This document shows positions 42,706-57,086 of a DNA stretch of 64,000 nt, piece by piece. The translations under genes were made by a program, and so were the position numbers. Every line of letters starts with the position of its first letter. Position 1 is the first letter of the stretch. Source of the stretch: Anthoceros angustus. Taxonomy: Eukaryota > Plantae > Anthocerotophyta. Location: the NCBI GenBank assembly GCA_010909165.1, contig MU008169.1, positions 992,001-1,056,000 of the forward strand, written 5' to 3'. A model generated the notes under the pieces. It saw only the letters and a list, made by a program, of their open reading frames with translations. It was not told where the DNA came from and searched no databases.

Positions 42706-43564
42706 CAAAAAGGGAATAGTTAAGCTTGGTCCGCAATCTCCCTAATTTTTATTGTTCTTATTTTCATGGCTTTAGGATGGGAGTCCAACTTCATCATATG
42801 TAATCCAAGCCATTAAGGTATTTTGTAGATATTTTTTTTATAAATAAAAAAACTAAACACTCAAAACCATGACCCCAAAACAGTTTGAGTTTGAGTTGCT
42901 GAATATAAAAATATTATTCTAATGGTCTTAATATGTAACCAATGTGAATAATGATGGAAGGTCTCACATATTCATCTCATGCAAGAACGAGCACATTCTA
43001 GAACATTGGGGATTGCCGGGGGTTGAGTTTTGCGGAGTTTTCTTGTAAGTTTTTTAGCTTGTTAGGACCTCCTAACCTTTCTTCTAGCAATATAATGTAC
43101 ATATATAAATACCCGGCCTATTTTACATCTATTAATAACTAGTATAGATAATATTGAAATTCTGAATGATTATAAAAAAATATAATATCTAATTATCATC
43201 TTACGCTTATTTCTTGACTAGTAGGCTAACCTTCGGATCTACTAATATTAAATCAAGCATACGATCCAATTTTAAATTCCATATGTTTTATTGACAATGG
43301 TCTGGGGCATTCCCGAAACCCCTGAAGTATTGACGAGTTCGTTGACAGCAGCATGCAGGCCTTCGGGAAGTGTGTGACAACATGAGAAGCGCGCAGCGAG
43401 AATGCGAGGAGTTCACGGCTGACTGTCCAACTTCTCCAGGCGTTCATGACCAAGTTCAAGAAGGCCATGATGGATCGCCAAGGCTTACTTCCCGCGCCAC
43501 ATCGATCGCGTGAAGTGCAGGGTGGAGAGAACACGGCTCCAAGTTTAGTTGCGCGTGCCCGAGA

Positions 43565-44388
43565 ATGGGTTTAGGTGGACTGTTGCTCTATCTTGATGTT
43601 TGCTGCAAGTTTCTCGTATGATTCTTCATCTGCTGGACATTCCGCTCTAGGTTTAGGTTAATCGGCCATTCCTGCTTACCGCGCATGCATGCACCCGCAG
43701 GACACAGCAGATTTCGTGCTCGGCAAAACGTGTCCGACGTCGACCCTCGGCCTAGTCCTCTTCCCCCGGGCATTACCAATCCCCTATGGAGATATGTAGA
43801 TCTCCGGGTGTTCGTTGCATACCGAATTCCGGCCGCCCGCGAGACGTTGCTCGCTACAGGAGTTCTCCTTGAAGCTCATCCTTCCGTAAGTTGCATCGAT
43901 ATCACAGTCCATGCATGCTGTTCAAAACATTGTTGGAGCGTTATGGCTCAGATGTGAAACCCTACTAACACCGGTTGCTGTGCTGCGTTAACGTTGCATG
44001 CGCTGGCTGGAATCTGTAAATGCAGAATGGCCAGTGCAGCGTGTTCGACGGCACACGGCAATATCTGGATGAGCTGCTATCAGAACCCGGGGCATCACTC
44101 CCCGAGATGTCAGTGCGAGAATTCCACCACAGCCTCCTGTTCATCTTACGGCCTAATGTGCGCGGCGACAGGGTTATGATTCTATCGGGTCATCTCCGAG
44201 GCCGCATGGGAATTGTTGTGGAGATCGTCTGCTTGCATCTATCAGAACCTAACGCGTATGTGCTCATGGATGCGGGCGAGAATAATGACAGACTCGTCCA
44301 GGTTGTCAGGGTAAGGGTGAGGGACACGGCCTGGATACCATATGAGCCTCCCGGCGTCCGATTTCCATGGATCTTGCTCAGCATGTGA
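43565..44388 (+). CDS. Array unit 1: stand-alone tandem-KOW protein, 185 aa; exons 43565-43574, 43701-43885, 44026-44388
   Basis: Phase-consistent GT-AG introns give MGLGHSRF...PLPPGITNPLW...TGVLLEAHPS-NGQCSVFDG...LFILRPNVRGDRVMILSGHLRGRMGIVVEI...AYVLMD..VVRVRVRDTA. Resembles the Spt5 C-terminal or KIN17 KOW pair. Confidence 0.72.
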
Positions 44389-44649
44389 TCAGCGTATGTG
44401 CATACATCTTAGCAAGGAAGCGGCTCCCAACTTTGAACCATTTGCCATCAGGCTTTGTACAGTACCTATGTTTTGATTTGAAACGATTCGTTGATTTAAC
44501 ATTTCATACAGACATCGCCCTTCCGTTGTTTGACACTCAGAAGGATGTCCTAATTGAGTCTACATCGTTGTCGAGCTCAAAACAGCAGGAACCCCATCGT
44601 TGTCGAGTTTTAAGACTGTACAGCAGAAACCCAATCCCCGATCGCCAGC

Positions 44650-45830
44650 GGAAACTTTCAGGTTAGAGAAAATCTACCCTGACTGATTTTAACGAGTGCG
44701 CTCTCAAATCCTGGAGCCAGGCCTTCGTGGCTGATGCGGTAGCAGCGTTGATGGGGTCATTCACGACCTTCCCAAACACGTCAAGCGGCAGGCTGAACGG
44801 ACAGGAATATGATGTCAGCTTGCAGGAGATTGGACTCCACATCACGACTTCCAAAAGGTCGCAGAACCATGCTTCCAGACAATTGCCAGCTACTTGTATC
44901 ACGGCATCCGGCAAGAACTGGCTGTGTCCGCAACCTTGCATTGTTGAGACTAGTTTTCCCATCTACTTTCCCTTCATCAAACTCTTTATCTATCTGTCAA
45001 CAACCACTTGAATACCCAATTTCGCACAAGCTCAGGCGCTGGAACGTTTTCTTCTCAAAACATACAAAAGTACGTGGCCCACCCGAGCCTTGACCGATCT
45101 TGCCTTTGCAGAGGGCGTTAGTGGATACATGTGCGAAATGTGGGCAAGCTTCAGCATAGCCTCCAAATACTCAGACTCCGACCATTGCATGAAAACGTGA
45201 GCGACTTCATAGCCACGTTCAGAAGGTCATGATTTCATTCAAGAGTGGTGGATGGTCTTTATCAGGAGCATCCAAAGAGTTTCCTTCGACAGTAACTTTT
45301 CCAGTGATTTCCACCTTCACAATGGCTTGTTGCCGTGCAGCTCAAGTCTGTTGGATAGATGTGCAAAGTAGCAGGCCCATCTCCCAAACTAAGGGCCAGC
45401 ATCCTGAGTCCTTCCATACGGAACAGAATTACTGAATCAATGAACTGCACCACTAACCTTCAAGGTATATCTGATCACAGCAGGTTGCAAGGAAGACCTT
45501 TGAAATGCAAACAAGTAGGCTTACTGGCAGCACTGTGAAGTAGGAGCAATCTTAGCATAATGAAATGGTAGCTCAAAAGATATACCAAACCGATTGGAAT
45601 ACTGGCAACTACAGTCCAAACAAATTTAAACTAGCTACCTACATAATTTGCCGTTGCGAGCTCGAATTGTTACATGGCTCAGGACATCAACAGATGTCGA
45701 GCTCAAAACAGCAGAAACCCTAATTCCCAGAAACAATGACACATGTGAAGTGTGCAGCCAAGGAATACATTTGTGACACACCAATGCATGTATAATCATG
45801 AAGAAGAAAACAAACCTTGTCCGTTGCCTT
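44650..45830 (-). pseudogene. Inverted, intron-containing GWD fragment (copy of ~36475-37760)
   Basis: Reverse strand reads VSAVLSSTSVDVLSHVTIRARNG and SLPLDVFGKVVNDPINAATASA; GWD introns are co-linear. Confidence 0.9.
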
Positions 45831-54890: not shown

Positions 54891-55880
54891 CATACCTTCC
54901 ACACATAGGCTGCCGATAGCCCATTTACAAGTGGCGGAGTTTGTAGACGTGCTTGCTATGAGCTCAAGTTTGCAGTAGCATATTGTATATATAGAAAATA
55001 GTATATATAGGAAGTAGTTTATGTACAAATATTGACAAAGCCTACACAGAAGTTTAAACGTGTTTTTTCTCTTCTACTAAAGGGGGAAGGTTTGCTTTCT
55101 TCTCTAAAAGGGCTATTCCTTCAAAGCCTTTGCAAAGAATTCTTGCTCTCAAAGACCACTCCTTCAATGTTTTGGTACAAACACTCCTTGTGCAAAATGC
55201 TTACTTCTTCAAAGCCTTTTCAAATAAAATTAATAAACTTAAAAAATAAAAAGAGTCTGCACTTTCATTACTACCTGCTTGAGGTACCTAAATTTGTTTT
55301 AAGAAAATACTTCTTCAATACCCTTCTACAAGAAAATAGTTGGTATTAATCAAAAGAAATATATTGTTTGCATTTACTGTGAGCTCAGTTGCTCCTCTTC
55401 ACTCCGACCCCCGGGTCCCCATTTGTTGTCCCTTCCTAGATGGTCTCTTTCCATCGTTCTTTCACCTCAATAAATCATCTCTTCAATCCTTTACTGTGAG
55501 AAGTATGTTGTCATTGAGATTTGAACTCAATGTGAGAAGTATGTTGTCATTGAGATTTGAACTCAATACCTCTTACTTAAAAGATACGAAGGAAGTGCTT
55601 TCCAATTAGGGCTTTAATTAGATCTGCTTGATAAAAATATATTCAAAAGTCCAATCCACTGCTGGCCTCCCATGCCGTGCCGGAACGTGAAAAGCACGGG
55701 GTGGGAATGCGAGGAGTCCAGGACCGACTGTCCAGCTTCTCCATGGCCAGGCGCGTTCATGACCCAGTGTTTGAAGAAGGAGCGCCTTGGCTTACGTCCA
55801 TCGCCGGATCGGTATCGTGCGCGTGAAGTGCAATCAAGGAGCGGAGTATACGGCTTCAAGTTGGTTGCGAAAGCAGCAGA

Positions 55881-56667
55881 ATGGGAGGTGAAGAGGATGA
55901 CTACTCTATCTTGATGTTAGCTTCAATTTTTCCGCAAGATTCTAGATCTGCTGGCCATGGGGCTCTAGGCTGAATTACGCTAATCGGCCATTCATGCTCA
56001 CCGTATATATGCATGCACCCGCGCAGGACTCAACTCAAATGCTCGGAGCAATGACATCGACCTTGGTCCTCTTCCCTCGGGCATTGACAATCCCCTATGG
56101 AGACTGGACGGTCTGATGGTCCCCGTTCTGTACCCGGTGAACAGCCGCACGGGAGAGACCGCTGCGGGAGTCCTGATGAGAGTTCATCCGCACGTAAGAT
56201 ACCTCACATTCCATGGATGCTGTTCAAATCAGTGCACGGGGTATTTGAAACTCTACTGACACCAGCTGCCATGCTGCATCGCCTGCATTGGCGGTGGCTG
56301 GAATTTGTCATTGCAGAATGGCCTGTGCACCGTGTTCCACGGAACTCGGCCACAACTGTTGCGAGTGCTGCGAGCGGAGCCGGATCCAGGCTTGTCAACA
56401 ACAGCGTGGCCAGGCGGGGAGTACCACTACAGCACGTTGTCCATCTTGCAGCCTACTGTGCGCGGCGAGAGGGTTATGCTTCTGTCGAGCCATATGCGAG
56501 GCCGCTTCGGAATCGTTCGGGACATCGTCTACTGGCGTGACGCAGAGCCTGACGCGTATGTGATCATGGATAATGGCGGTGCGAGCAGGAGTAAGCATGA
56601 TGTCCCAAAGCTAGAGCGTGTCAGGGTGAGGGACCTGGCCAGCGTCCGAGATGAACGAGAGGCCTGA
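55881..56667 (+). CDS. Array unit 5: tandem-KOW protein, 174 aa; exons 55881-55887, 56027-56193, 56317-56667
   Basis: In-frame splicing gives MGGLNS..PLPSGIDNPLWRLDGLMVPV..AGVLMRVHPH-NGLCTVFHG..LSILQPTVRGERVMLLSSHMRGRFGIV..DAYVIMD..RVRVRDLA. A further exon-3 scrap lies at about 56745-56835. Confidence 0.72.
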
Positions 56668-57086
56668 GCGTCCGATGAGGATGCCCATGCATATGGACAC
56701 CCGTGCATCTTGCTCAGCAACTGATCAGCGTACATGATTCTCTTGGGGCTATCTGCGAGGCCGCCTCCATGGGAACCGGCCGTTCGGAAGACCAACTCAC
56801 GTTTCAGCTCGGAGCCTGACGCGTATGTGCTTGGACAATACGTGTCCTCTGTCCATTTATGGAGATATCAAACATACTTTTATTAACTATTTACTACAGT
56901 TCGATCCTTAAATTTTTTCTCTTTTCTTAATTTCATTATTGCAGGAACTTGTTTAAAATAAATATGGAAAATGAGAACACAGCATATTCAATTTTTCAAC
57001 CTACCACATATTTGATTATGTTTCACAACCTACAAGATATTTGATTATGCTTCGTAGCTCTAGTTTCAAGATCAGACTCGGAATAG

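Follow-up and report, generated by a model that had tools for sequence, protein, structure and literature searches.

The 64,000-nt stretch of Anthoceros angustus DNA analysed here (assembly GCA_010909165.1, contig MU008169.1, positions 992,001 to 1,056,000 of the forward strand; called the window below and numbered from its first letter) contains, between about 43 and 57 kbp, a tandem array of five units which share the same short coding start. A first-pass annotation had read these units as five genes for stand-alone tandem KOW domains. The array exists, but only units 1, 4 and 5 are intact KOW genes: unit 2 is a pseudogene, and unit 3 carries TAF4 exons instead. We consider it probable that the units form an old tandem array which gains and loses copies, that their parent was a protein-coding gene for which the collections searched hold no detectable relatives, and that the family is real, i.e., a small, possibly lipid-anchored KOW module with a diversifying surface.

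Each unit has an ATG followed by four or seven bases and then a GT donor, located exactly where the first-pass annotation had placed it. The start-exon string ATGGGTTTAGGT (ATGGGTTTAG then GT) occurs at 43565, 45847 and 52966, a count reached in none of 100 shuffles, and the corresponding strings are ATGGCTCGAGGT at 48840 and ATGGGAGGT (ATGGGAG then GT) at 55881. Self-BLAST confirms that units 1, 3, 4 and 5 have a common 5' leader and that homology in unit 2 begins 17 nt before the ATG; it also shows that units 3 and 4 share approximately 500 nt further upstream. No extra copies of the leader, the KOW exons or the TAF4 sequences are present elsewhere in the window.

Units 1, 4 and 5 each splice into an open reading frame (ORF), as had been proposed, with introns at the same positions (intron 1 in phase 1, intron 2 in phase 0), all of them GT-AG. 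The three proteins are indeed visibly diverged, with pairwise amino-acid identities of 48-50%, and the motifs listed in the first-pass annotation (PLP.GI.NPLW, GV...HP, G.C.VF.G, L.IL.P...G.RVM.LS...RGR.G and AYV.(M/L)D) are invariant columns of their alignment. The start codon sits in a context of A at -3 and G at +4, and none of the upstream in-frame starts lengthens the ORF. The base composition of the exons is coding-like, with G+C content by codon position in the order GC1 > GC3 > GC2, and the isoelectric points (pI) of the proteins range from 7.9 to 11.2. An intact gene is read as three exons, of which the first, at least ~250 nt long, comprises the leader, the ATG and four or seven more bases before the donor. 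Its product would be a protein of 19-21 kDa in three parts: an MGxxxS start, an apparently beta-rich region of ~75 residues, and a C-terminal KOW (SH3-like, five-stranded) barrel.

The second of the two conserved blocks (P...V..G.RVM.LS...RGR.G.V...AYV..D) is, judged by sequence and predicted fold, a KOW domain. Taken singly, exon 3 of unit 1 scores just under the cut-off of the Pfam KOW family (PF00467; 21.9 versus 22.3 bits, E 1.5e-4), and Pfam gives no KOW match for exon 3 of unit 4 or unit 5. With a family profile built from all three exon-3 products, a search of 1.84 billion representative proteins (the protein collections used do not include this genome's own proteome) returned three matches. 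The sole credible one (E 1.5e-5) is P0001, a metagenomic protein of 248 aa that contains KOW three times over (Pfam KOW 1.5e-10, KOW5_SPT5 8.7e-8); the other two, P0002 (5277 aa, leucine-rich repeats) and P0003 (a low-complexity repeat), were judged spurious. Profile-to-profile alignment of the second block with the P0001 repeats in hhalign gives a probability of 87% and an E-value of 3.8e-6 (1.4e-4 in a second run).

A joint profile of the family and the P0001 repeats, searched against PDB, matches the second KOW of GPKOW (2.5e-4) and also uL24m, SPT5 and many uL24 chains. The family-only profile finds nothing significant in PDB, Spt5 included, and a word-indexed protein search with exon 3 of unit 1 gave no match. 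With the joint alignment, AlphaFold2 predicts five strands for residues 90-169 of unit 4 (53457-53693) at a predicted local distance difference test score (pLDDT) of 70.8, and the top Foldseek matches to that model are mostly KOW proteins (query template-modelling score 0.55-0.62). Feature searches of the ESM Atlas with pieces of exons 2 and 3 reached scores of 0.76-0.85 at low recognition, and their leads (DUF3912/KOW, SRA) are not used as evidence. For the second block, the proposal of a fast-evolving family of stand-alone KOW modules without detectable relatives in the searched collections is supported. Such a barrel would be a small module that binds RNA or protein.

The first block (PLP.GI.NPLW...GV...HP.G.C.VF.G), which spans intron 2, had been paired with the second as a tandem KOW. 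It has no Pfam match, whether searched exon by exon or with a 64-residue stretch of unit 4 that crosses the junction, and no PDB sequence match, and in hhalign its profile resembles neither the second domain nor KOW repeats. The tandem part of the claim is therefore not established, and profile comparison does not support an internal duplication that would make domain 1 similar to domain 2. The family also resembles human SPT5 KOW6-7 in sequence, a likeness that serves only as a lead. In SPT5 KOW6-7, KOW6 lacks the motif, and W979, P1017 and I1018 line a groove (PMC6076269). The family's invariant W and ILxP would be compatible with this description, which again is only a lead.

Unit 3 combines the shared start with a different gene. 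Its homology to the other units breaks off at 48938, ~90 nt inside intron 1, and picks up again at 51066, and exon pieces from the 2.1 kb between match the Pfam TAF4 family (E 1.5e-5, 1e-3 and 0.12) collinearly along the profile. RNA evidence comes from a single public run (X1, 29 million letters of contigs) mapped to 43350-49349, i.e., to units 1, 2 and the start of unit 3. One 455-nt contig covers 48602-48847 without mismatches and joins 48849 to 48989 and 49064 to 49200, both across GT..AG introns. The unit 3 leader is therefore transcribed, and splicing of the TAF4 chimera uses its exon-1 donor; the only RNA support is for this shared first exon. Because the contig is unbroken from 48602 to the donor, the "start-codon micro-exon" of the first-pass annotation is a tiny coding piece before a donor, as described, but forms the coding end of a first exon of the usual kind. 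The leader of the chimeric mRNA contains at least five upstream ATGs, and an upstream ORF beginning at 48743 overlaps the main start. In this copy a swap at the DNA level placed TAF4 C-terminal exons behind the same first exon. As a clean exon swap with RNA support, unit 3 illustrates in textbook form how a gene can be born through exon shuffling.

For the intact KOW copies, we conclude that selection has long kept the frame and the core residues (Jukes-Cantor distance, JC, 0.3-0.45 between copies), and that most residues change freely or diversify. Three results carry this conclusion. In a neutral simulation using the observed spectrum and amount of substitution, 0.18% of runs leave all three ORFs open. 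Nucleotide alignments made blind to codons contain 19 internal gap runs within exons 2 and 3, and every one is a multiple of three, compared with 6 of 30 in the leader and introns. Invariant amino-acid columns number 62 against an expected 44.9 +/- 4.4 (z ~3.9), a count reached in none of 2000 simulations, and columns in which all three copies differ are also too many (36 observed, 25.4 expected). Since both extremes are in excess, the codons must fall into a constrained class and a hypervariable class: a third of codons are fixed by selection, and the remaining codons change fast. The variable KOW residues would be under diversifying or very relaxed selection.

In three-way alignments, JC distances are ~0.38-0.46 for exons, 0.31-0.44 for four-fold sites and 0.19-0.40 for leader and introns. 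Pairwise alignments had suggested exons diverging twice as fast as introns; that difference shrank in the three-way alignments, and the claim we make is that exons diverge at least as fast. Decay of CpG sites was considered as a cause of the fast exon divergence and rejected, as the observed/expected CpG ratio of the exons is ~1 and CpG transitions account for 9 of 188 polarised changes.

Several points weigh against reading the array as a family of maintained genes. The Nei-Gojobori ratio of nonsynonymous to synonymous divergence (dN/dS) is 0.86-0.93 for all pairs of units 1, 4 and 5, and a ratio near 1 was among the results which the first-pass annotation had said would speak against its proposal. 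Divergence is the same at the first, second and third codon positions (p 0.30-0.35). No partition (strands, loops, region 1, N-terminus) has a dN/dS below 0.8, and the lower ratio looked for in strands relative to loops was not seen. On rate alone, the genes look neutral. We do not take the ratio as refuting them, because the frames are open, the gaps are in frame and conserved codons are in excess. Missing homologues mean only that none is detectable in other sequenced organisms; at this rate, orthologues as distant as the plant matches of the GAUT-like gene described below would be undetectable anyway.

The remaining points on that side concern expression, composition and method. Within the interval mapped, run X1 has zero depth over units 1 and 2 and shows no spliced KOW transcript; given that it consists of only 29 million letters of contigs, zero depth is no proof that these two units are silent. 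The leaders hold 4-8 upstream ATGs, some overlapping the main start, which would damp translation if they are part of the mRNA, and five are in the unit 3 contig. The proteins have an extreme Arg/Lys balance, with 19-21 R versus 0-4 K. The selection tests assume a star tree and use just three or four sequences, and the KOW model used the P0001 repeats in its alignment (an earlier model of unit 1 exon 3, made without them from a three-sequence alignment, had a pLDDT of 43). Finally, myristoylation, to which we return below, is a motif match only.

Much of this is what one would see if the units were neutral relics, i.e., decaying duplicates of a gene fragment whose protein is no longer of use, with open frames as survivors and motifs as residual ancestry. 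The dN/dS values, the evenly diverged codon positions, the lack of a slow partition, the zero RNA depth and the leaders rich in upstream ATGs all fit such relics, as does the fact that two of the five units are broken or replaced. However, relics would seldom keep three frames open, confine gaps to multiples of three in exons only, or produce an excess of invariant codons, and at JC distances of 0.3-0.45 the copies still have their start codon and Kozak context and every one of the six splice sites. We therefore regard neutral decay as unlikely, although it is the main alternative: should the genes prove not to be expressed, the array would be no more than a common cluster of decaying duplicates.

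The gain and loss of copies can be followed in the units themselves (Table 1). Unit 2 is a pseudogene, broken by inversion and repeat insertions. Its inverted piece has 63% identity to unit 4 residues 63-129 (tblastn, minus strand) and 82.7% nucleotide identity to 53334-53556. The inverted arms that enclose its exon-3 tail are 142 nt each and 91% complementary. Run X1 contigs carry this sequence in great abundance, with a summed depth in the thousands and many different flanks, so the arms belong to a transcribed repeat family resembling miniature inverted-repeat transposable elements. A 9-bp microsatellite, (GCATCCAAT)n in ~6 copies at 46440-46500, borders the inverted exon-3 piece on one side and possibly marks the inversion breakpoint.

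Each unit also contains an inverted piece of the adjacent GWD gene, which indicates that the array grew by local segmental tandem duplication. A minus-strand ORF at 45635-46057, overlapping the GWD copy of unit 1, matches Pfam GWD1_pHisD (2.8e-6). A run X1 contig matches exon-like GWD pieces and skips intron-sized gaps.

Table 1. Features of the array, in window coordinates
Feature	Position	Strand	Basis and remarks
Unit 1 leader (non-coding exon 1 plus upstream homology)	43158..43564	+	Homologous to 48423-48932, 52739- and 55684-; 7 upstream ATGs
Unit 1 gene, intact	43565-43574 / 43701-43885 / 44026-44388	+	GT-AG, open frame, 185 aa, MGLGHS...
Inverted copy of 3' part of neighbouring GWD gene, forming unit 1 tail	44653..45777	-	78.6% identity over 1208 nt, introns included, to 36604-37761 (+)
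Unit 2, 5' part, lacking a leader: ATG exon at 45847-45856 and a still open exon 2 at 45988-46163 (MGLGPN...)	45830..46163	+	Homology from 45830; translation
Unit 2 inverted piece: last part of intron 2 plus the start of exon 3	46219..46470	-	Inverted repeats, tblastn
Unit 2 exon-3 middle	46557-46634	+	Frame translation, stop at end
Unit 2 exon-3 tail	46858-46900	+	Enclosed by inverted arms 46641-46782 and 46993-47134 (142 nt); whole segment 46557..47134
Shorter inverted GWD copies at ends of other units	47292-47597, 51211-51669, 54354-54794	-	Homology to GWD gene
Unit 3 leader and ATG exon ATGGCTCGAG (MARG, Gly2 lost)	48423..48849	+	82% identical to unit 4 leader; ATG exon at 48840
Unit 3 TAF4 C-terminal exons replacing KOW exons	48940..51066	+	Pfam TAF4 on exon pieces, RNA joints
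Unit 4 leader	52633..52965	+	Self-BLAST
Unit 4 gene, intact	52966-52975 / 53088-53260 / 53370-53696	+	GT-AG, open frame, 169 aa, MGLASS..., pI 11.2
Unit 5 leader	55684..55880	+	Self-BLAST
Unit 5 gene, intact	55881-55887 / 56027-56193 / 56317-56667	+	GT-AG, open frame, 174 aa, MGGLNS...
Sixth-copy remnant: middle of exon 3, frameshifted	56726..56832	+	tblastn, unit 4 residues 106-138, two frames

A 26-bp tandem repeat (7 copies, 89-98% identity) occupies 42508-42743, just upstream of unit 1, and a GGC/GGCGGG-rich block of at least ~560 nt at 57442-58000 lies directly 3' of the array and reaches the edge of the scanned region. Farther away, at 609-1883 on the minus strand, is an intronless GAUT-like GT8 ORF whose best database identity is 75% (a transcriptome), with 61% to Sphagnum and 59% to Selaginella. 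These values place the genome in a plant lineage that diverged early and has no proteome of its own in the protein collections.

The PROSITE-type N-myristoylation pattern G-{EDRKHPFYW}-x(2)-[STAGCN]-{P} at the N-terminus fits all four KOW units (MGLGHSR, MGLASSS, MGGLNSN and, in unit 2, MGLGPNK). Residues 3-7 differ among these units although MGxxx[S/N] is retained, and in the TAF4 chimera, which starts MARG, Gly2 is lost. This start points towards lipid anchoring and less to an obvious nuclear role, so far as a motif can. N-myristoylation may anchor the proteins at membranes, in which case they would not be nuclear Spt5 mimics.

The first-pass model was of the latter kind: a tandem KOW pair derived from the Spt5 C-terminus (or from GPKOW/KIN17), acting as a nuclear competitor or decoy for elongation or splicing partners. 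We think this model distinctly improbable. The second block has a KOW assignment and its best PDB match in GPKOW, the first block gave no KOW match in the searches described above, and the start is of the myristoylation type. A wider proposal would treat the shared first exon as a reusable expression cassette, coupled by DNA-level swaps to modules of the RNA polymerase II (Pol II) machinery (a highly diverged descendant of an Spt5-type KOW pair in four units, the C-terminal half of TAF4 in one). The results would be a diversifying set of truncated decoy or dominant-negative modules, some of them lipid-anchored, which sequester or sense partners, e.g., in conflict with transposons or pathogens. 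We see this proposal as a long shot.

Cargo of a gene-fragment-capturing element (Pack-MULE, Helitron or similar), with its promoter and first exon driving KOW, TAF4 and GWD pieces, is very improbable: the units do contain fragments of three unrelated genes and inserted inverted-repeat elements, and the contig encoding P0001 also encodes an ORF read by eye as the C-terminus of a Pif1/Helitron-like helicase (Pfam: no match), but no terminal inverted or direct repeats surround the units, no long terminal repeat, terminal inverted repeat or Pack-type structure was found around them, Pfam finds no transposable-element domain in the proteins (no transposase, Rep/helicase, Gag or integrase), a kind of match which the first-pass annotation had said would count against it, the leader, KOW and TAF4 sequences are confined to the array within the window, and the GWD piece copies the adjacent gene, as local segmental duplication predicts.

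The preferred reading, a family of small free KOW proteins, can be set beside several known systems. Among these are the KOWs of Spt5/NusG, above all the KOW6-KOW7 pair at the C-terminus of plant and metazoan SPT5 (PDB 5OHQ and 6ER0). The family lacks the NGN domain (no Pfam match in any exon piece), KOW1-5 and the C-terminal repeat region (CTR), and its proteins have 169-185 aa versus ~1000. It also differs in being tandem-arrayed, in its myristoylation-type start and in its dN/dS near 1, and the family by itself has no significant sequence similarity to Spt5.

GPKOW/MOS2 provides the best PDB match of the domain-2 profile in its second KOW, where LETLVPKAEGDRVMVVLG aligns with LSILRPKVRGQRVMILS. 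The C-terminal parts of GPKOW/MOS2 and KIN17 are two-barrel modules and in that respect alike, whereas one KOW barrel is shown for the family, which has no G-patch, zinc finger or winged helix. The Pfam models for G-patch, GPKOW_C and SH3_KIN17_C give no match in the family; GPKOW_C and SH3_KIN17_C match P0001 weakly.

P0001 itself (JGI contigs L001 and L002) is, like the family, a stand-alone KOW protein, and its VxGDRVxIxxGxxxGxxGxxxxF....SAYVLLDxxGGAR compares with VRGxRVMxLSxxxRGRxGxV....AYVLMDxxGAxR in the family. It differs in having three KOW-only repeats, no counterpart of region 1 and an intronless ORF. The same contig has an 82-aa KOW-motif ORF starting with MG (L001:1086-1334) and, on the opposite strand, an ORF with a helicase-like reading by eye (L001:2678-2866, minus). 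Stand-alone KOW ORFs cluster on L001 as well.

In evolutionary pattern, the nearest likeness is to accelerated-evolution families such as venom and reproductive proteins, which have tandem genes, a conserved scaffold and a variable surface. The KOW family resembles these in that its exons diverge at least as much as its introns and leader, dN approximately equals dS, the frame is kept, and conserved and hypervariable codons are both in excess; it differs in having no signal peptide or cysteine framework. To our knowledge, KOW domains occur almost only inside large, slow-evolving machines: NusG/Spt5, ribosomal proteins, GPKOW, KIN17 and Mtr4. Here a KOW barrel appears in a small free protein with a lipidation-type start and a partner region that matches no known domain, multiplied in tandem, with dN/dS near 1 and the frame kept. 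If the genes are expressed, the array is a natural test of how far the sequence of a KOW scaffold can change, and its proteins may represent a new class of binding module.

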